From: Macrostomum lignano
Taxonomy: Eukaryota
Length of the DNA: 64,000 nucleotides
Assembly (NCBI GenBank): GCA_002269645.1
Contig: NIVC01001135.1
Coordinates: 124,001-188,000 of the forward strand
Direction of reading: 5' to 3'
Of the stretch, positions 941 to 64,000 are shown in pieces. Below the pieces are notes generated by a model. That model saw only the letters and a list, made by a program, of their open reading frames with translations, searched no databases and was not told where the DNA came from. Positions within the stretch are counted from its first letter, which is position 1. Each line of letters begins with the position of its first letter. The translations under genes were made by a program, and so were the position numbers.

Positions 941-1192
941 CAGCTGGATGAGTCATCTAACTATCGATTAGCCAATGTAAGCAAAACTGGATGAGTCATC
1001 CGACTATCGATTAGCTAATGTGCGCACAGCTGGATGAGTCATCCGACTATCGATTAGCCAATGTGTGCACAGCTGGATGAGTCATCCGACTATCGATTAG
1101 TCAATGTGCGCACAGCTGGATGAGTCATCCGACTATCGATTAGCCAATGTACGCACAGCTGGATGGGTCATCCGACTATCGAGTTGCCAATC
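941..1192. repeat. 43-bp minisatellite
   Basis: Unit cagctggatgagtcatccgactatcgattagccaatgtgcgca, about 5-6 copies. Confidence 0.95.
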
Positions 1193-1215
1193 AATGCACT
1201 ATGTCCCAGGCGTAC

Positions 1216-2121
1216 CTGAGGCATGATGCTGACTACGCTGACAAGCACGATGGTTGTGAGCAGTTTGGTAGTTCGAGTCATCTGCTTGTCATCGTTGGCG
1301 GCTGCGGCCTGATGCTTGCCAGCCGCCGCTGCCGCACCAGTCTTGGCTCCGGAGCGCAGAGTCCGCCGCCTCTCGTCGGTCCGTTTCAGTGATCGAATCA
1401 GAAAGATGCTGAGCACGGTGAGCAGCAGGACTGGCAGGAATTTTATGCCGATGCCCATTATCCAGAAGTTCAGACTGCTCAACACTGAGTCCTGCGAAAA
1501 TTTCAGCCCGAATGTGTAATAAGACCCGTTGATGTCCAGCTGGCAGGAGTGCTGGCGCAGAGACACGGTCTCCGCGTCCGTGGGCACCACGTGATGCCCG
1601 AGAGTGTTCGGCACCACCATGCCGACGGAGGCGGCGGCGGCCAGAGCGATGGCGAGTCGGGCGGTGCGGCCGGTGCACAGCTGCTTGCTCCGGACCGGCA
1701 GCTCGATGTACACCAAGCGGAAGGTGGCCAGGGCTACGGTGATCCAAGAGCTGCAGGCGTGAGCAAAGATTGTCACGCACAGCTGAGCCCATAGAAACAG
1801 TTGCCATGGCAACGGCTCCGGACAGTCCAGCTTCAGCCGGTTGTTCATGGTGAAGTAGAGGCAGAACGGCAGGTAGACGGTGGACATGAGGCAGTCAGAC
1901 AGGGCCAGAGCGGTCAGCAGGGTGTTGGTGGGGTTGCGCATCGAAGGCTGTGCGAACACAGCGATGTTCACCAGGTTGGTGGTGACGCCCAGGCTGCACA
2001 CGAAGGTGGCCAGGTACTTGTGCACGTCCGGGTACCTGCTGGACAGGGCGGCCAGCAGCGGCGGGACCGGGTCGCACTCGAGAGCGGTGCCGTTGTCCAG
2101 CGTTGAAGTCGAGTTGGCCAT
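1216..2121 (-). CDS. Class A peptide GPCR of the Srw / myosuppressin / sex-peptide receptor type; TM1-TM6 exon, last exon not found in window
   Basis: TM1 GVTTNLVNIAVF, TM2 NTLLTALALSD, TM3 SSWITVALATFRL, TM5 NFWIMGIGIKFLP, TM6 TKLLTTIVLVSVVSIMPQ. A donor CAG|GTACGC ends the exon at 1216. ATG at 2121 is directly preceded by an acceptor-like CAG. Confidence 0.88.
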
Positions 2122-24200: not shown

Positions 24201-26086
24201 TACTGTCCGGTGTCCGAGCTGGCTACCGGACGCTTCTTCGTCACATTCTACAATCCGGCCAGCAGATTGAGCTGGCACTCGGCCAGGCTGCCCGTGACCG
24301 GACGGTACTACCGCGTACTGGATGAAGCCGGAGCCCCTGTCACCTCGCAGACAATCCCGGTGAACAATGGCACTCTCCGGGTGCCCGAGAGGAACCTATC
24401 GATAGCTGTCAACGAGCTGGCGTTCTTCGTAGCCTCGATTCCTCCGCTAGGCTACGCTGTGTACTCTGTGGAGCCGTGCAACTCCACGGACCCGGGCGCG
24501 TCCGTGTTCACGCCGATTCTGCCGACGACCAACGCGGGTCGCTCGGCGTCGGAAATTAGCGTCGGTCTGGCGTTCTACATTGGAATGCGCGGCAACTCTA
24601 GTGGAGAGCAGTTCAGACCGTCTGGGGCCTACGTGTTCAGGTGTGTAAGCGGAAGTTGTCGTACATGTATGTTGTTGTTTCCTTCCCCTTGAAGTGCCTG
24701 AGGTGGGTGAGTTTGGTAGCGCCTTCCTGAAGTGACTGATCTGGGGCTTCCTGAAGTGACTGATGTGGGACTTCCTGAGGTGACTGATGTGGGACTTCCT
24801 GAAGTGACTGATCTGGGGCTTCCTGAAGTGACTGATGTGGGACTTCCTGAAGTGACTGATGTGGGACTTCCTGAAGTGACTGATCTGGGGCTTCCTGAAG
24901 TGACTGATGTGGGACTTCCTGAAGTGACTGATGTGGGACTTCCTGAAGTGACTGATCTGGGGCTTCCTGAAGTGACTGAGGTGGGTCTTAAGATGCGTGA
25001 CTCTAAATCTTAGCTCGTAACTGTACTTGAGCTGTGAAACAATTTCCCAGGCCAACAACGGACCGACCCCAGACGCTATCCGCTCGCATTCAAGCCCAAG
25101 TGATCGGTCCCGTAGTCAACGAAACCCATTTTAACTACAACGACTGGGCGTACCTGGTTACTAGGCAGTATCCGGGTGCCAGTTCAAACTATCTAGAAGC
25201 CGAGTCGACTGTCGGTCCGCTACCGCTAGACGACGGTGTCGGTCGGGAAGTTGTCGCCGTCTATTCAGCCGACGGTCTGTCGGCGTCATCCGGCGAATTC
25301 CTGGTGGACTCGAACGGCCGCCAGCTGATGCGGGCTCGGCGAGACCCCAGCCGGCCAGAGGCCGCCCAGTTCCGGCCTGCTAACGCCATCGTCAGCGTTG
25401 CCGATGCCGCTCGTCAGCTGACGGTGCTGACCGACCGAGCCGCGGCCGCATCCTCGCGACCAGCCGAAGGCCAGCTCAGCGTGATGTTGCACCGAGTGAC
25501 GCTCGATGACGACGGATTTGGCGTTGGCGAAGCCCTGCGTGAGCGCGGCTCCGACGGCCGGGGCCTGGTGGTGAAGACCAGCCACTGGTACTTCCTGGCT
25601 GAGCCGGCGGCCTCTGCCGATCGCTACCGCTTGCTGGCAAGTCAGCGGCACCGCTCTCCCCTGGTGACTTTCTCGCTGCTGCAGCCGCGTTCCGCTTGGT
25701 GCCAATGGAGCGCCTTGACCGCTCCGCTGCCGGACAGCGTCCAGATTCTCACTCTGGAGCCCTGGCGTCAAAGTCCCGACCGACTGCTACTCCGGCTGGA
25801 GAACATCTTTCAAGCAAACGAATCGTCAGCTCATTCTGGGCCGGTCACAGTCGATTTGGGAGCCACATTTTCCGCGTTCGCCATCCTGGATGCCGTTGAG
25901 TTGAATTTGTCCGCCAACCAGCGCCTGGCGGATCAGACCCGGCTGAAGTGGCGCTCCATGCAGACAGAGGCAGTTGATCAGCAACCTCGCAGGGGACCGC
26001 TCACCAAGTCGCTCGAGATGACGCTGAGGCCTATGGAAATCAGGACGTTTGAAATTCGAGTAGCTTACAAAGGCGGAACTCTGTAG
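18262..26086 (+). CDS. MAN2B1: Lysosomal alpha-mannosidase (GH38), 961 aa; exons 18262-18594, 19515-19811, 20719-21340, 24043-24640, 25051-26086
   Basis: Signal peptide, [26 protein letters not shown] nucleophile motif, [25 protein letters not shown]-terminal LRPMEIRTF. Intron phases 0,0,1,2 are consistent; total 2886 nt. Confidence 0.96.
18766..19225. repeat. Telomere-like 18-bp minisatellite in MAN2B1 intron 1
   Basis: Unit ccctaacccaaccctaat, built from CCCTAA variants. Confidence 0.9.
19255..19400. repeat. 19-bp minisatellite in MAN2B1 intron 1
   Basis: Unit caattagttgccaattagt. Confidence 0.9.
19840..20692. repeat. 24-bp minisatellite in MAN2B1 intron 2
   Basis: Unit ggtgatgggctggtgtgtaacaca. 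Confidence 0.98.
21350..23160. repeat. 20-bp minisatellite in MAN2B1 intron 3
   Basis: Unit gaggtgttagaggaggctgt. A variant unit recurs with ~440-bp higher-order spacing. Confidence 0.98.
23180..23335 (+). mobile_element. Short degenerate RTE fragment, same family as 9891-10370
   Basis: cagtggacgctgacggag...gctgccttcaagatcggc...cgccgcgccggtctggtccgtccaagcgacctgttgcgccg aligns to the WTLTE...AAFKIG...RPS-LLRR segment with a deletion. Confidence 0.75.
23395..23935. repeat. 19-bp minisatellite in MAN2B1 intron 3
   Basis: Unit ccaatgtcaagcagaggtt. Confidence 0.97.
24722..24985. repeat. 24-bp minisatellite in MAN2B1 intron 4
   Basis: Unit cttcctgaagtgactgatgtggga. Confidence 0.97.
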
Positions 26087-55001: not shown

Positions 55002-56566
55002 GAGGCCCTGCTGAGCGGCGCCGCAGCGGGCCTGCTAGTGGACCTGTCCCTGTACCCGCTGGACACCCTGAAGACCCGCGCCCAGTCCAGCGCCGGCTTC
55101 TGGTCCTCGGGCGGCCTGCGCGGCCTCTTCCAGGGCGTCTCCGTTGTCTCCCTGCTGTCCATGCCGGGCGCCGCCGTCTTCTTCGTCACCTACGACACTG
55201 GCAAGCGGCGCCGACTGCCTGTGCCGGTCGCCGCTTGCCTCGGCGAAGCCGCCGCCTGCCTCGTCCGCGTGCCCTGCGAGGTGGTGAAGCAGCGCGCCCA
55301 GACCGACCGGCTGGGCCGTCGGCCCTACCGGATCTTCGCCGACTGCCTTCGCGAGGAGGGCCCGGCGGGACTCTACCGAGGCTTTCGCAGCACCATCATC
55401 CGCGAGCTACCCTTCGCCAGCCTGCAGTTCCCGCTGTGGGAGGCCTTGAAGGCTCTGGCCGGGCCGGGCTGGGCTGACAAGCCCGCCACCTCCGCCGCCT
55501 CCGGGTTCGCCGCTGGCGGGCTGGCCGCCTTCCTCACCACCCCGCTGGACGTGGCCAAGACTAGGATTATGTTGGCGTCCAGGTGAGCACTGCGGGTCGA
55601 GACCTTAGTGTCCCATAGATTGGCTGAATTCCCACGTAGGCTAAATGAATTCCCCCTGTAGGCTGAATGAATTCTCCACAGTCTGACTGAATTCCCCCCC
55701 GTAGGCTGACTGAATTCCCCCAGTAGAAGCGCGTGTCCTTGGGGTTGTGAGGTGAGCAGAGCAGGCTGACTGAATTCCCCCCGTAGGCTGACTGAATTCC
55801 CCCCCCCCCGTAGGCTGACTGAATTCCCCCCCGTAGGCTGACTGAATCCCCCCCCGTAGGCTGACTGAATTCCCCCCCGTAGGCTGACTGAATTCCCCCA
55901 GTAGGCTGACTGAATTCCCCCAGTAGGCTGACTGAATTCCCCCCCCGTAGGCTGACTGAATTCCCCCCCGTAGGCTGACTGAATCCCCCCCGTAGGCTGA
56001 CTGAATTCCCCCCCCGTAGGCTGACTGAATTCCCCCAGTAGGCTGACTGAATTCCCCCAGTAGGCTGACTGAATTCCCCTCCCCGTAGGCTGACTGAATT
56101 CCCCCAGTAGGCAGACTGAATTCCCCCAGTAGGCTGACTGAATTCCCCCCCCCGTAGGCTGACTGAATTCCCCCCCGTAGGCTGACTGAATTCCCTCAGT
56201 GGGCTGACTGAATTCCCCCGTAGGCTGACGGAATTCCCTCTGTAGGCAGGCTGAATTGCCCGCAGTCTGGTTGAATTTCCCTCAGCTTAAACGAATTCCC
56301 CATGCTCCATCTGAATTCCCTACAACCCAGTGTACAGCAAGCAATTTAACACAGAGAAACTCTTCTCAACTCCTGTCATTTCAAGCCACGACCGCCTGGC
56401 CTCCGGCAGCGTGCTGGCCGCCCTGTCCACGGTGCACTCGGAGCGCGGCCTGCCGGGCCTGTTCGCCGGGGCGGCGCCGCGAACGGCCATGATTGCCATC
56501 GGCGGCGCCGTGTTTCTTGGCGTCTACGACACCGTGAGACTCCTGCTGAGCAGGCTGGCCAGTTAG
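55002..56566 (+). CDS. SLC25A26: Mitochondrial S-adenosylmethionine carrier; exons 55002-55582, 56386-56566; short start exon unresolved (candidate ATG near 53794)
   Basis: Three carrier motifs YPLDTLKTR, VPCEVVKQR, TTPLDVAKTRIML; GLYRGFRSTIIRELPF; GLFAGAAPRTAMIAIGGAVFLGVYD. Phase-2 intron is consistent. Confidence 0.92.
55615..56310. repeat. ~23-26-bp minisatellite with variable C-run (SLC25A26 intron)
   Basis: Unit gtaggctgactgaattcccccc. Confidence 0.95.
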
Positions 56567-57100
56567 TTATTATTTATCACTTAATTAGTTACTGATAATG
56601 ATCTGCATTTCCATCTTTGAATTTTATTGATTAATTTGGACGGCTCTACTTACAACTACTATGATGATAGCTTGATTTTTGCAACTGTTTAAATAAAATT
56701 GCCTCACTTCTCACTATTTTATTTGTACTTTTTGACTGCGTTGAATACCATTATGACTCGTTTTCGGTTGTGGATTATTGATTTTTTCCTTGTCAAGGCG
56801 GATAAGTTGACAATTGGTATTCCAATATTCATTCTGAGGGGGGAATCATGGTTTCAAACCCACGAGTCTCGCGGCCCCTGGTTCGACTCCTTGCGCGGCC
56901 ACATTCATTTGGGGCTGATGTGCACGAAAATTGGCCGTGAGGGCAGGCCACCAAGGCACAGAGAGAGTGTACATGCCGGATGATTAGACAGTCAGGGCCG
57001 CTGTACACCCGTGTGTGCGCTGGTTGTGGGGCGTTGCGCCCGTTCCTGCAAACACATGACCGTATAATCGACCTTCGAATTCCAATACTTTGGGGGAATC

Positions 57101-59490
57101 ATGGTTAAGGTAATGTTTCTCATGCTAAAGCGCCTGTTCGCCTGTGGATAAATCTTGTGGTGCATATCAGCGTTGTCTACTATCAGTAGTCTAAAAAGCA
57201 TGTCAATTGACATTTTCAGCAGGCATCGGTCGGTGTTTATCACTACAGTCGGCGGCTCCAGCCGCTTCGCTGCGAGTTCTGCGGCGGCGTCGGTCGGTTC
57301 TCCGACATTGTGTCACTCAGCCGGCTGACTGTCGCTGACTACGAGGCCCTGTTAAACCGCGGCTGGCGTCGAAGCGCCAGCAGGGTGTACCGGCTGCGGC
57401 CGGACCTGACCTGCTGCGCCAAGTTCCCAATGCGTCACCTGGTCGATGCGTTCCGGCCTAGCCGGAGCCAGCGGCGCTGTCTGAGGCGATTCGCCGGCGC
57501 TCTGTTTGGCAGCGCGCCAGTTGGGCCCGCTGGTGATTCCGATTTGCCAACCGGAAGGGGAGCCAACTATCAAACCGGAAGTGAAACCAACTATCAAACC
57601 GGAAGTGAAACCAACTATCAAACCGGAAGTGAAACCAACTATCAAACCGGAAGTGAAACCAACTATCAAACCGGAAGTGAAACCAACTATCAAACCGGAA
57701 GTGAAACCAACTATCAAACTGGAAGTGAAACCAACTATCAAACCGGAAGTGAAACCAACTATCAAACCGGAAGTGAAACCAACTATCAAACCGGAAGTGA
57801 AACCAACTATCAAACCGGAAGTGAAACCAACTATCAAACCGGAAGTGAAACCAACTATCAAACCGGAAGTGAAACCAACTATCAAACCGGAAGTGAAACC
57901 AACTATCAAACTGGAAGTGAAACCAACTATCAAACCGGAAGTGAAACCAACTATCAAACCGGAAGTGAAACCAACTATCAAACCGGAAGTGAAACCAACT
58001 ATCAAACCGGAAGTGAAACCAACTATCAAACCGGAAGTGGAACCAACTATCAAACCGGAAGTGAAAATATTTTACATTTTATCAGCAGCCGGATGCGCCC
58101 CGGAAAGGCCCGCTACAAGCGCTGGTCAGCCGGACTCGATGCACTGCGCGCCCGAGCCGGCGCCCTCGGCCAATCCGCCGACGCTCTGCTCGCCGAGCGC
58201 GCCAACCGTTGGCGCCGTCGTCGCGAGCTTCGCCAGCGCCGCCAGTCGGCGCCCAGCCTAGCCGAACTCGTCGACCCGCTGATGATTGGCGGTCCAGGCG
58301 GCCGCGGTCGCCTCCTGTGGCGCCTGGTGCCGTCGGACAGCCAGCTGGCCATCAGCTCCGGACACGCCTGCTACTCCGCCTACCAGTGCGCCGTCCACGG
58401 CGACTCCCCGGCCGACTGCGGCGAGGCCAAGTTCCGCCGATTTCTCTGCCTCAGTCCGCTGGCGGCGGAGGCGGCGGAGGCTGAGACCGACGTCCAGTGG
58501 CCGAAGGGATCCCACCATTCCCAGCTGCTGCTGGATGGCCGCCTGATCGGCGTTGACGTCATCGACATTCTTGACAGGTTTGTTGGCGGGGACAGAGCGA
58601 CCACACTAGCAGCTGCCTCTGCCATTCTCAAAGCTGCCACTCAGCCAGTTAAAAACTCCCCTCAGCCCCTCATCTACACTGAGAATCGCCCCTCAACCAC
58701 ACTGAGAATCGCCCCTCATCTACACTGAGAATCGCCCCTCAACCACACTGAGAATCGCCCCTCAACCGCACTGAGAATCGCCCCTCAACCGCACTGAGAA
58801 TCGCCCCTCAACCACACTGAGAATCGCCCCTCATCTACACTGAGAATCGCCCCTCATCTACACTGAGAATCGCCCCTCAACCACACTGAGAATCGCCCCT
58901 CAACCACACTGAGAATCGCCCCTCATCTACACTGAGAATCGCCCCTCAACCACACTGAGAATCGCCCCTCAACCACACTGAGAATCGCCCCTCATCTACA
59001 CTGAGAATCGCCCCTCAACCACACTGAGAATCGCCCCTCAACCGCACTGAGAATCGCGCCTCAACCACACTCCCTCAGCACCGTCTCCTCCGCCTACTTC
59101 TTTTTCGACCCGGCCTTCAAGCGCCTGCAGCTGGGCAAGGTCAGCGCCCTGCTGCAGCTGCGCCGCCTGCAGGGACACCCGAGGCTGAGGCACTACACCA
59201 TGGGCTCATACTCCCCGCTGTCTGTTAAGCTGGCCTACAAGGCGGAGTTTCAGCCGGCGCAGATCATGTGCCCCATCGCTCTGCGCTGGCTTCCATTCGA
59301 CAGAGACTATCGCTGTCGGCTTGAGGCCGGTCAGCTCAGAGGTCTCTATGCCGACCTCGGGGGTGCCGATGATGACGCTGAGGTTGGCGACTCCTCGGAC
59401 TCTGACGGTGTTCGGCGGGCTGGGCTGCGCCGGTTCGCCAGACTGGCTGGGCAGCAGTGCGCCTCTCGCTTTCGGCTGCTTGTTGACTGA
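57101..59490 (+). CDS. ATE1: Arginyl-tRNA--protein transferase 1; exons 57101-57109, 57220-58577 (possibly split by an intron 57504-58085), 59079-59490
   Basis: RCEFC, LTVADYEALLNRGWRRS, TCCAKF, YQCAVHGD...FRRFLCLSPL, LDGRLIGVDVIDIL, SSAYFFFDP...LG..SAL, YTMGSY...KLAYKAEFQP...CP. Phases are consistent. Micro first exon MVK|GTAATG is inferred. Confidence 0.93.
57550..58065 (+). repeat. 24-bp minisatellite (~21 units) in frame with ATE1 (TGSETNYQ)n
   Basis: Unit accggaagtgaaaccaactatcaa. Confidence 0.98.
58655..59070. repeat. 23-bp minisatellite in ATE1 intron
   Basis: Unit cacactgagaatcgcccctcaac. Confidence 0.97.
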
Positions 59491-59504
59491 TGGAGGTCAG
59501 AGAT

Positions 59505-59990
59505 GGAAGAGAGAGGGTGTGAAGGGAGAGGGGGTGAAGAGAGAGGGGTGAAAGAGAGAGGGGTGAAGGGAAAGGGTGTGAAGGGAGAGGAGTGAAGGGA
59601 GAGAGGTGAAGGTAGAGGGGTGAAGGGAGAGGAGTGAAGGGAGAGGGGTGAAGGGAGAGGGGTGAAGGGAGAGGGTTGAAGGGAGAGGAGTGAAGGGAGA
59701 GGGTTGAAGGGAGAGGGGTGAAGGGAGAGGGGTGAATCGAGAGGAGTGAAGGGAGAGGAGTGAAGGGAGAGGGGTGAAGGGAGAGGGGTGAAGGGAGAGG
59801 TGTGAAGGGAGAGGCGTGAAGGGAGAGGGGTGAAGGGAGAGGAGTGAAGGGAGAGGGGGGAAGGGAGAGGGGGAAGGGAGAGGGGTGAAGGGAGAGGGGT
59901 GAAGGGAGATATGGTGAAGGGAGAGGGTGTGAACGGAGAGGCGGGTGAACAGAGAGGCGGGTGAAGGCAGAGAGAGTGAAGAGACAGAAG
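59505..59990. repeat. Purine-rich ~15-17-bp degenerate repeat
   Basis: Recurrent ggggtgaagggagag. Confidence 0.9.
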
Positions 59991-60417
59991 ATGAAGCGAT
60001 TCCCTAGTCAACATGGATTCATGCACAGCTTATTCCGGTTTTATCCAATGTGTTTGCAGTCCATACCGTCAAACTGATAGAGCTACAATGTAAATTCATT
60101 AACAAAATCAATCAAAAAAATAATAAACGAAAGAAGAAATTAATATGTTGATTTTTACTATTTTAAAGCAACGAACAAAAGCGCTCATTTAAAAAAATGG
60201 TTTGTTATATTTCTCTTGTCTTCTTGACTTTCTATGAAATGCGCTACAAAGCCGGAAAAAATCAAATATCGAGCATGCAACTAAAAGCGATGATTTGGAA
60301 GCAATAAAGTTTATAAAACCATTGCAGCAGCTACAGCACTTCTATTGTGTAAAAAGTAACAAGCCGTAAATCACATTAATTGCCATTCTAGAAAGCGACT
60401 ACATTTCTGGGTGGGAA

Positions 60418-60817
60418 AATCTGTCAGACTCCACAGCTTCCACCCCATAGATCTGTCAGACTCCACAGCTTCCACCCCATAGATCTGTCAGACTCCACAG
60501 CTTCCACCCCATAGATCTGTCAGACTCCACAGCTTCCACCTCATAGATCTGTCAGACTACACAGCTTCCACCCCATAGATCTGTCAGACTCCACAGCTTC
60601 CACCCCATAGATCTGTCAGACTCCACAGCTTCCACCCCATAGATCTGTCAGACTCCACAGCTTCCACCCCATAGATCTGTCAGACTCCACAGCTTCCACC
60701 CCATAGATCTGTCAGACTCCACAGCTTCCACCCCATAGATCTGTCAGACTCCACAGCTTCCACCCCATAGATCTGTCAGACTCCACAGCTTCGACCCCAT
60801 AGATCTGTCAGACTCCA
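60418..60817. repeat. 32-bp minisatellite
   Basis: Unit ctgtcagactccacagcttccaccccatagat. Confidence 0.97.
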
Positions 60818-61709: not shown

Positions 61710-62805
61710 TTTTTTCTGAAACAATTGACAGTCCATAGTTTGTGAGTTTTGTTTAAATATGCTGGTCAGATGATTTACACAAAATTTTAAATGAAAATGA
61801 CAAGATGACCTGGCACCTGGGGAAAATTGATTTAAATTTCTGATAGAGCCAATGATTTTAATTGCATTGCTATTATATTTATAATCATAAAATAAATTTG
61901 TTTTAACTTTCTCAAAATGTCTTATCACTATAATATATCTATACAACTAATATATATTATTTGTATAAAATGTAAAATATTAACATATTCGATTTAAAAT
62001 TATAAAGGACAGAACACAAGTTGCTAGCTAAAATATAACCGACTAGATAAATTTCACCTATGATAATAAATAAACATTACTTTTTTGCAGATGAATGATT
62101 CTTAGAAATATTGCTTTTTAGTATGTGCATCTCGTGCGTGTAGGTTTACCTCAGAGTCCTGACCTTTTTAAAATAAAGTTTAATTTTGCAATAAAAGATT
62201 CTCTGATTCTTTAAAAACTTAAAAGCACCCGCTCAGACCCCTAAAACGGTGGATTAAATTTCCGATTGCGATTGAACATCATTTATAAAAAAACTGCTTA
62301 CTTGCTCAATGTTCTTCTCAGGAGTCCCAGACGATAAAAGTGATTTAAGTGAAGTGTAGCTCATATGTTAAAATGATCGCATCTACGATATAACTAATTA
62401 TGTGTAGTCGTATGTGTTCTAATTCATATGAAAGCTTTAAAATGTATAGTATGTTCATTACATAAACTAAAATTTATTTACTTGGAATAATAGAGGGCCA
62501 GGTAATAAGCAGAATTAGGAATCTATTTGTTATACGAGTATTTCTTGTTCAAATAATAATTAATTCTTAATTATCCGTAGATTTGGCAATAACATGTACG
62601 AGCGTATGTTTTCAATCAGAAACGGCAATAATTATCTGCTTTGCAACTGATCGCCTGCGCAGAAGTGTTCCATTATGAGTGTATAAATAAAATTAACAGT
62701 TTATTTATTCATCATTGATTTAGTAATTAACAATTCCAATCTGTGTTCAAACGAATCATGAAGAATGTGTATACTGTATAGTATGTTGTAACTACATTGT
62801 ATACA

Positions 62806-62837
62806 CAATAACAACAACAACAACAACAACAACAACA
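62806..62837. repeat. (CAA)n tract abutting the LINE 5' end
   Basis: Direct. Confidence 0.95.
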
Positions 62838-62946
62838 CCCGCTGTGCTTTACGCGCAGCCTGCGGCTCGCCCGCAGCTCCTACCCGGCGCCGCGTCTTCG
62901 TCGCGGAGGGGAGCACCTCTCTTGGGAAGGGGTCGAAGAGCGCCGG
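62838..62946 (+). ncRNA. HDV-like self-cleaving ribozyme at the LINE 5' end
   Basis: P2 62884-91/62938-46; P3 GCG/CGC around L3 TCTTCGT; P1 3' strand GGAGGGG; P1.1 C62896-G62913 and T62897-A62912; P4 ACCTCT/AGGGGT; J4/2 CGAA with catalytic C62934. P1 5' strand is CCC (62838-40) + CTCC (62877-80). Confidence 0.85.
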
Positions 62947-64000
62947 AAAACGGACACTACGTCCCTCGTGCTTTTGGTTACTTGGATTGTTATCTTTCTC
63001 TGCAGCGCGTACCTGGACCACGGGAAGCTCGGCAGTGAGGCCCGCCACCTTCCCACGCTGCTGCTCAGGGCCGGTGATATCGAGCTCAACCCGGGACCTG
63101 CTCTCTGCGGGCAGCGTGAGTGCGGACGCCCGCTCAGAGGGAAGTCCCTCCACTGCCGCATCTGTGATAAGTACTACCACCTCCAACGCGACTGCTCCGG
63201 GCTGAGCAGATGGGCGGCTAACAAGGCCATCGGCTCCACCGAATGGCGCTGCACTAGCTGCACGAACCGAGGCAGCAACGCCGTCAATTCCACTTATTCT
63301 TTCGACTCGGACAGCCAGCCAGAGGTGGCCCCTACTGAAGTCGCCGAAGTTAGCCGGCGACAAGAACTGCTCCAACGCATCCAACGAGACAAGCCGAACT
63401 GCACCCACTGCCGCAAACCCATCCGAATCAGCACTGTTATTGCGTGCCGTAACACCTGCGAAGGTCTCTTCCATAATGCTTGCACCCAGGCCACCCGGGA
63501 TCAGATTAAACGCGAAGTCAGCAGGGGAATGTGGCGCTGCCCTCCTTGCTCGAAAGCAGCCAGCCGTAGTCCACCCTCCCCCACGGGCTCGGACCCGACC
63601 ATCCCTAGGCGCGGCAGCTCAGCTCCCGGTTGGGACAGCTCGAAACCGACCTTAACCATTCTGCAATGGAACGCCGACGGGATCTGCAACAAGATGGGGG
63701 AGCTGGAGGAACTAGCTCAGAGACTTCAGGTCGATATTATCACCGTCCAGGAGTCCAAGCTCACGTCGCTCAATCGAACCCCTAAGCTGTCAGGCTATTC
63801 CACCGTTCGCAAGGATCGCAAAGTAGCTAGGCTCGACCCCAGCATCAAAGGAGGAGGCCTGTTGCTCTTCGTCCGCCAAGGCATTCCGTATCGTAAAATC
63901 CAGGGCTGGAACGGCGGCACCACTGAAGGGAGCCGTATCGTCGTGAACACGTCCGCCCGCGACAGACTTATCATCACCAATATTTATCGCCCCCCGATCC
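62838..64000 (+). mobile_element. Ingi/L1Tc/Vingi-like non-LTR retrotransposon, 5' part (ribozyme, 2A, 2 PHD fingers, APE); runs off the window
   Basis: One stop-free frame 62812-64000: LLLRAGDIELNPGP; C4HC3-like fingers CGQREC..CRIC..H..C..WRCTSC and CTHC..CRNTC..HNAC..WRCPPC; APE motifs LQWNADG, TVQESKL, RKDR..GGGLLLFVR, NIYRPP. Clade is tentative without the RT. Confidence 0.92.

Follow-up and report, generated by a model that had tools for sequence, protein, structure and literature searches.

The stretch of DNA analysed here (the window) comprises 64,000 nucleotides of the Macrostomum lignano contig NIVC01001135.1 (positions 124,001 to 188,000), and its content is metazoan: an ORF for an Srw-type GPCR, a GH38 mannosidase exon and an arginyl-tRNA transferase ORF. 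AT-rich and GC-rich stretches alternate around those host ORFs. A (CAA)11 microsatellite at 62805-62837, found by TRF and visible in the sequence, is either flank or target of what follows directly 3' of it; unique sequence starts at C62838 and is GC-rich from there to the window end. The 109 nt at 62838-62946, the focus of this work, are the first of a GC-rich non-LTR retrotransposon that encodes a 2A peptide, PHD fingers and an APE endonuclease. The element and all of the features described below are read on the forward strand.

The reading frame that starts at 62839 is open over all 387 codons visible in the window, has no ATG before residue 290 and none upstream of the 2A peptide. A conserved in-frame motif, CGUGCUUUUGGUUA (62967-62980), takes the form CG(U/G)GUUUUUG(G/C) across the family, and the GUG at 62968-70 shares its frame with the 2A peptide. 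That ribosome-skipping peptide, LLLRAGDIELNPGP (63058-63099), was recognised in the translation, and the same motif occurs in relatives. It is followed by two PHD-type zinc fingers within 63106-63549, the first (63106-63261) recognised in the translation and the second (63400-63549) by Pfam (PHD, PF00628, E = 3.1e-6), and then by the start of an APE-type endonuclease domain (63661-64000; Pfam PF03372 and homologues). One ORF thus carries a D(V/I)ExNPGP motif at its N-terminus, next the PHD fingers and then an APE endonuclease, and such a 2A-PHD-APE organisation has been described already (PMC3708506). Because an open frame with these three components runs from 62839, position 62838 was taken as the 5' end of the non-LTR retrotransposon. 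The window stops at 64000, inside the APE domain, and any RT/RNase H region of the element would lie beyond it; the order RVT_1 then RNase_H in three relatives (L001, L002, L003) tentatively suggests an Ingi/I-type clade for the window element. The copy looks young, since its reading frame is intact through 2A, PHD and the start of APE.

The strand order of a nested double pseudoknot is complete at 62838-62946, running P1 5', P2 5', P3-L3-P3', P1 3', P1.1, P4, J4/2 and P2 3'. An earlier note on this DNA, made from the letters before any search, had claimed every one of these core elements in this order, and P2, P3, L3, P1.1, P4 and the CGAA of J4/2 were each found where it had placed them. The P2 5' strand CCGGCGCC (62884-62891; CCGGCGC(C)) forms seven contiguous base pairs with 62940-46, which belong to the P2 3' strand G(A)GCGCCGG (62938-62946; sequence and descriptor), and C62891-G62938 is an extra P2 pair across the bulged A62939. 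P3, identified in the descriptor matches, is GCG/CGC (62892-94 with 62902-04) and carries a 7-nt L3, UCUUCGU (62895-62901), which follows the pattern U-C-x-x-C-G-Y; the corresponding loops of relatives are UCCUCGU, UCAACGU, UCCACGC, UCCCCGU and UCGACGC. The P1 3' strand GGAGGGG (62905-62911), placed by descriptor and by energy folds, is followed by AG (62912-62913), the 3' side of P1.1. Here G62913 could pair with C62896 and A62912 with U62897, two pairs that were read from the sequence and represent pairing potential only; in the relative L002 the same positions hold CC in L3 and GG after P1. The P4 hairpin ACCUCU-CUUGGGA-AGGGGU (62915-62933) has 6 bp, including one U.G, and leads into J4/2, CGAA (62934-62937), whose C62934 is the candidate general-acid cytosine, the equivalent of HDV C75. 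The same C-GAA stands directly before the P2 3' strand in eight relatives (L001, L002, L003, L004, L023, L050, L100, L102).

The 5' strand of P1 comes in two parts. Part a, CCC (62838-62840), pairs with G62909-G62911 in the constrained MFE (pair probability 0.94-0.95), which makes C62838, the first base of the element, the proposed +1 nucleotide. Part b, CUCC (62877-62880), pairs with G62905-G62908 (pair probability 0.95-0.96) and is followed by the J1/2 spacer UAC (62881-62883); by our measure, the distance from the P1 end to the 6-nt P2 core is 4. Between the two parts lie hairpin A, GCUGUGC-UUUAC-GCGCAGC (62841-62859; 7 bp including one G.U, 5-nt loop), and hairpin B, CUGCGG-CUCGC-CCGCAG (62860-62876; 6 bp, 5-nt loop). 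Hairpin B is flush with hairpin A and with P1 part b, with zero unpaired bases, and the claim that two hairpins abut here without a linker was borne out both in the sequence and in the constrained fold. Seven Watson-Crick P1 pairs are possible only across this 36-nt insert; a good contiguous P1 of 6-7 bp is absent, and the register that leaves a spacer has only four contiguous pairs (CUCC/GGAG). The single-stranded (CAA)11 at 62805-62837 cannot pair with P1, and its last base, A62837, would be nucleotide -1 under the split-P1 model. A P1 made from the first 7 nt of the element (CCCGCUG) was also considered and rejected: the sole near-complement, CAGCGCG at 63003-09, has no P3/L3 in front of it.

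An Rfam scan of the whole window and of 62700-63100 gave no match to the HDV-family models (HDV_ribozyme, CPEB3, drz-agam-1, drz-Agam-2-2, HDV-F-prausnitzii) at gathering score, nor any at E <= 10 in the 401 nt. As a nested structure and without constraints, the 109 nt reach their MFE in another, inactive fold (-54.1 kcal/mol, z only -1.25), which retains both hairpins and a P2-like helix and in which the P1 3' strand pairs with the P4 sequence instead. Competing folds of such a kind are usual for pseudoknotted ribozymes; given this one, co-transcriptional folding would have to favour the active fold. The Rfam result, the modest z of the whole 109 nt and the many chance matches that relaxed descriptors yield elsewhere are the points in favour of a GC-rich structured 5' UTR in which an HDV motif arose by chance. 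We consider such a coincidence highly improbable. The Rfam HDV-family models are narrow, as judged from canonical relatives that also stay below the gathering score (three with sub-threshold matches, 22.8-30.9 bits), and the core is complete, in the right order, with a family-typical L3 and C-GAA. A strict descriptor, run on the window and all loci on both strands, rarely matched, and a good P1 close to P2 was found only at element 5' ends. The position, directly upstream of the conserved motif and the 2A peptide, is that of canonical ribozymes in 12 relatives. The suggestion that an HDV-like ribozyme sits at the element's 5' end was therefore upheld by the complete core and by distant relatives that carry canonical ribozymes at the same place, and from its sequence the core at 62838-62946 is almost certainly a genuine HDV-like ribozyme.

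The 12 distant relatives with canonical, contiguous-P1 HDV-like ribozymes upstream of 2A (L001, L002, L003, L004, L016, L023, L027, L050, L066, L100/L101, L102 and L103) provided a family standard. L027 is the same sequence as L028. The proteins closest to that of the window element are 25-36% identical to it, and many relatives share the order leader, 2A, PHD, APE, then RT and RNase H (RVT_1 then RNase_H in L001, L002 and L003). Their ribozymes lie directly after the flank and upstream of the conserved CGUGUUUUUGG motif and 2A. P1 and P2 differ in sequence among them with pairing kept, at sites that had been picked by a pairing descriptor. P1 in the relatives has 7/7 pairs, once 6/7, and its end is mostly 3-4 positions from the 6-nt P2 core, with extremes of 2 and 11; none of the 11 independent relative sites has G as nucleotide -1. 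In L001, L003, L004, L016, L023 and L100/L101, P1 starts 0-2 nt after an upstream microsatellite, and in L100 and L101, which are independent insertions, identity begins exactly at P1 +1. A (CAA)n tail occurs at the element end in L001 (7231-7256), and a link to (CAA)n or (CAG)n repeats seems to characterise the group. In L103, a 21-nt duplicate of the element's own 5' end lies upstream of the predicted cleavage site; extra 5' sequence at the junction is therefore possible, which weakens the argument from the element boundary.

A second copy of the element family was sought by blastn in the window and in the protein collection, which exact look-ups of window ORFs showed not to include the host genome and where identities reach at most 36%; none was found in either. 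When a split P1 was sought in all relatives, only spurious long-range matches were obtained. A mini-hairpin split P1 in L102 was rejected, being less stable than the contiguous P1 of the same ribozyme (-15.4 vs -17.5). A 20-mer scan of bacterial and archaeal genomes returned 19 short matches (20-27 nt), which lie in GC-rich bacteria and were put down to chance, and the corresponding scan of viral contigs returned no match.

P3 and P1.1, one to either side, fix the P1 3' strand. Four possible 5' partners were compared, and this comparison of energies was made without P2, since P2 is pseudoknotted. The split P1 was the most stable (-35.4 kcal/mol), followed by a shifted contiguous P1 (-32.0), CUCC alone with its 4 bp (-31.8) and a bulged P1 (-25.7). 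When P3 and P4 were enforced and the P2 5' strand, L3 and P1.1 were blocked, the MFE was exactly the four-way junction, and in the constrained ensemble the pair probability was 0.94-0.96 for the split P1, 0.013 for the shifted and 0.0 for the bulged one. A terminal triplet that pairs with GGG over a junction without unpaired bases arose in 3/3000 dinucleotide and 0/3000 mononucleotide shuffles of the 39-nt leader, and for the two-hairpin stretch itself z = -3.3, with 6/2000 shuffles folding equally well. The split P1 also agrees with the regularities of the family: its +1 comes right after the microsatellite, its spacer is 4, its pairs are 7/7 Watson-Crick and it has A at -1. The case is made from one sequence, a single copy, through computational comparisons only.

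The proposal of a split P1 with cleavage at 62837/62838 thus fared best in energy, pair probability, shuffles, spacer, -1 nucleotide and 5' boundary, all for a single sequence; what it had overlooked is the shifted contiguous register. In that register CUCCUAC (62877-83) would pair with GGAGGGG, cleavage would fall at 62876/62877, and 62838-62876 (39 nt) would be an upstream leader removed from the RNA, one that could have been acquired at the 5' junction or be part of a transcript starting upstream. We regard it as unlikely. [quoted passage not shown] Its seven positions, however, include one U.G and an A x G mismatch, a defect reported for P1 as rare and inactivating (PMC3774820). Its spacer would be 0-1 nt, as against at least 2 in the relatives, a length at which published constructs were inactive or barely active (PMC4908430). 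Nucleotide -1 would be G62876, paired inside hairpin B, whereas no relative among the 11 sites has G, and the register is 3.4 kcal/mol less stable than the split P1, with the pair probability of 0.013 given above. It is, moreover, an expected by-product of the split arrangement: a 3' strand of GGAG then GGG lets CUCC slip 3 nt onto GGGG, and the shifted register is therefore weak independent evidence. It leaves the terminal CCC and the flush junction unexplained, and the lack of any Rfam HDV match at E <= 10 in the 401 nt stands against the 22.8-30.9 bits of canonical relatives.

CCCGC occurs at both 62838 and 62870, and on paper the second occurrence allows a bulged P1 in which GGAGGGG pairs with CCC (62870-72) and CUCC, the 4 nt GCAG between them bulge out, and cleavage would fall at 62869/62870. 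This arrangement destroys hairpin B at a cost of about 10 kcal/mol (-25.7) and leaves 32 nt of leader unexplained; its pair probability was 0.0. It was rejected on energy and pair probability and is scarcely credible.

More serious is the prospect that the fold is neat and has no function, i.e., that an ancestral contiguous CCCCUCC received a 36-nt insertion after position 3, in this copy or in a short-lived lineage, which cut or abolished cleavage. Without 62841-62876, P1 would indeed be perfect and canonical, with UAC as its spacer; CGCAGC is present at two places 18 nt apart (62854-59 and 62872-77), as fits an origin by local duplication; and a single copy of the element has been seen. A random 36-mer with two perfect hairpins flush to both P1 halves is very unlikely, though, as the shuffles and the z of -3.3 indicate; the frame is intact over the 387 visible codons of a copy that looks young, and no significant duplication of downstream sequence is seen in the leader. 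We judge a crippled ribozyme distinctly improbable. The related idea that the leader is a diverged duplicate of the element's own 5' end, as in L103, was tried and rejected: its local alignment scores were equalled by 792-1349 of 2000 shuffles.

Taken on the modelling, the split P1 with cleavage at 62837/62838 is the best-supported model, to which we would give an even chance. In the mechanism that we propose, transcription of upstream DNA would read through into the element, the RNA would fold into an HDV-type double pseudoknot, and self-cleavage between A62837 and C62838 would give the element RNA its exact 5' end. The 7-bp P1 would be assembled from CCC (62838-40) and CUCC (62877-80) on the continuous 3' strand GGAGGGG, with the intervening 36 nt forming the two abutting hairpins. 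In the resulting perfect four-way junction, P1 would be the stack that runs through and hairpins A and B would make up the other, and the hairpins would either be tolerated or act as a peripheral stabilising domain. The roles that the note proposed for the extra arms, in promoter activity, translation or binding of the ORF protein, are speculative. We infer from the models that this fold may form in vivo and cleave at 62837/62838. A point against it is that only 3 bp flank the putative active site in the split P1. By rough inference, the backbone three steps further on in an A-form helix is turned some 100 degrees from the scissile phosphate, which faces the catalytic cleft, so that a side stack placed there need not clash. 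That the locus is an HDV-like ribozyme, natural and active, with a perfect four-way junction for its P1 (3 bp by the scissile bond, 4 distal and a two-hairpin coaxial stack between them) is a tentative proposal that we place a little short of evens.

P1 is taken to be what sets the cleavage site, and, to our knowledge, published searches for HDV-like ribozymes assume that it is a contiguous helix of 6-7 bp. If the split P1 is real, the HDV fold tolerates, or uses as a built-in clamp, a break in the very helix that defines the cleavage site, and a class of ribozymes systematically escapes searches with contiguous-P1 descriptors and covariance models. The fold space of the family would be wider with a working split P1, which would also supply a new descriptor for genome searches and be an example of a peripheral domain inside a core helix instead of in J1/2 or P4. 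For the biology of retrotransposons, metazoan, microsatellite-associated, 2A-bearing elements join the lineages whose 5' ends are set by HDV-like ribozymes; the combination of ribozyme and 2A has so far been described for trypanosomatid L1Tc/Ingi. If the shifted register or the relic is true, the locus is an ordinary member of a known ribozyme class; if the split P1 is confirmed, it should be of moderate to high interest to specialists in ribozymes and retrotransposons.

Comparison with known systems begins within the family. The window ribozyme shares with those of L001-L004, L016, L023, L050, L066 and L100-L103 its position, its type of L3, the C-GAA of J4/2 and the spacing from P1 to P2; it differs in that P1 is contiguous in all of them and would be split in the window, among proteins that are 25-36% identical. 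The 5' HDV-like ribozymes of animal non-LTR elements were reportedly treated by Ruminski et al. in 2011. Those of R2, R4, RTE and Baggins resemble the present case in that processing of a co-transcript sets the element's 5' end and the downstream ORF has no obvious AUG, and they tolerate long inserts in J1/2 and P4. In R2 the cleavage site follows any contiguous P1 of about 7 nt, at times upstream in 28S sequence (PMC3774820); according to the same paper, mismatches in P1 are rare and go with lost activity. R2 differs in having a restriction-like endonuclease and no 2A, and in belonging to another element clade. No split P1 in R2-type ribozymes is reported in the literature searched, nor was any HDV-like ribozyme with a junction inside P1 found there. 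The earlier note had not known of this topology, and neither the literature search nor the 12 relatives showed an interrupted P1 elsewhere. The structured inserts known so far lie in J1/2 (P1.2 of drz-Agam-2) and in P4, not inside P1.

One HDV-like ribozyme with a structured peripheral domain, P1.2, in J1/2 is drz-Agam-2-1; there a stable helix that holds P1 and P2 together speeds cleavage, and deletion constructs without a P1-P2 spacer were inactive while those with a 1-nt spacer had little activity (PMC4908430). Like it, the window ribozyme has additional helices that are attached at the fold's 5' side and do not belong to the catalytic core, and by analogy it is plausible that hairpins A and B act in the manner of the P1.2 peripheral helix. 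Unlike drz-Agam-2-1, where the insert is in J1/2 after a complete P1 of 6-7 bp, the window ribozyme would have its insert within the 5' strand of P1, after base pair 3 and before base pair 4; P1 itself would become a four-way junction, and a normal 3-nt J1/2 is present as well.

Among the 5' HDV-like ribozymes, the window ribozyme would work most like L1TcRz, which lies within the first 77 nt (Pr77) of L1Tc/NARTc in Trypanosoma cruzi (PMC3185411, PMC3383444, PMC4035085). The likeness to it that had been pointed out at the outset is confirmed by the literature: cleavage of L1TcRz is at C1, and its P1 contains a triple G-C run (PMC3185411), and L1Tc/Ingi elements also bear 2A (PMC3708506). An interrupted P1 is not mentioned in the L1TcRz literature consulted on this point. 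Compared by organisation and description, the two differ in that the window element has a metazoan host, is adjacent to (CAA)n and would have an interrupted P1. Like L1TcRz, the window ribozyme is 5'-terminal in an APE-type non-LTR element that has an N-terminal 2A and a single long ORF, and its first base is a C.

The window element carries a canonical 2A ribosome-skipping peptide, LLLRAGDIELNPGP, at 63058-63099, in a frame that stays free of stops from the element's opening nucleotides onward and that takes in the ribozyme sequence itself. Between the ribozyme and the 2A lies a nucleotide motif, CG(U/G)GUUUUUG(G/C), at 62967-62980 in the window and in nearly all of the distantly related elements (L002:3036, L010:396, L011:1758, L018:390, L019:354, L021:399, L022:432, L026:147, L050:191, L098:188 and L100:199, among others), relatives that otherwise lack nucleotide similarity to one another. 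The motif is in phase with the 2A reading frame in 18 of about 20 loci, where it stands 64-148 nt upstream of the 2A, at a distance of 1 mod 3 in every case; it translates as (V/G)-F-L, and no frame break separates it from the 2A. Because the frame of the window element contains no AUG upstream of the 2A, the in-frame GUG at 62968-70 is a candidate near-cognate start codon. Alternatively, the motif may belong to a conserved leader peptide, or it may be a protein-binding site.

The same 5' region is overlapped on the minus strand by an ORF of 257 aa (62701-63474), which has no record in the protein collection and is probably spurious, produced by the high GC content. Elsewhere in the window, host-gene fragments mark it as metazoan, i.e., a Srw/rhodopsin-type GPCR ORF (1168-2121, minus strand), glycosyl hydrolase 38 C-terminal domains (25034-26086, plus strand) and an ORF encoding the ATE_N/ATE_C domains of arginyl-tRNA transferase (57310-58728, plus strand); the exact sequences of these three fragments had no match in the protein collection. 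Minisatellites with periods of 22, 24, 23, 14 and 32 nt, in up to 33 copies, are densely strung over 55624-60817, and one of them (57549-58066) lies within the arginyl-tRNA transferase ORF.

The 5' ends of the group's elements adjoin microsatellites of the (CAA)n, (CAG)n or (CCA)n type (window 62805-62837; L001:2822-2833; L003:2487-2499; L004:1-54; L016:623-788; L023:62-73; L098:41-66; L099:1429-1441; and the 5' flanks of L100 and L101), and L001 terminates in a (CAA)n tail (L001:7231-7256), which together suggest that these elements insert into repeats of this kind or prime on them. With an unstructured repeat in front of it, the ribozyme would moreover sit in a context that is uniform and does not interfere with it.

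Among the relatives, L008, L009, L010 and L011 form a subfamily with the 2A context QLLLRAGDVESNPGPGP and have in common a conserved 5' region of about 140 nt that starts near ACACAAACAGUCGAUGCCUCAUUGGG (L008:2280-2420, L009:1830-1970, L010:220-360, L011:1585-1725), in which descriptors found no canonical ribozyme; a weak candidate has P1 CUCAUUG/CAAUGGG and L3 UCAAGG. Two further relatives, L098 (60-180) and L099 (1442-1500), start immediately 3' of (CAA)n, and attempts at folding them yielded no complete HDV-like ribozyme; L098 has P3 CCC/GGG, L3 UUCUCGA and a 6-bp P1 candidate, UUCCAC/GUGGAA, with no clear P2 found. In L103, a P0020-family element whose 2A is the variant DVHPNPGP, the canonical ribozyme (region 1218-1260) is preceded by a 21-nt direct duplicate, GUUCCAGAGACAACAGCCUAC, of the 5' part of its own P1-P2, additional sequence at the 5' junction that lies upstream of the cleavage site. 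The HDV-like ribozyme at L004:55-107, immediately 3' of a (CAG)n repeat, is very small at 53 nt, and P4 is almost missing from it, since only about 7 nt separate the P1 3' strand from the C-GAA of J4/2.
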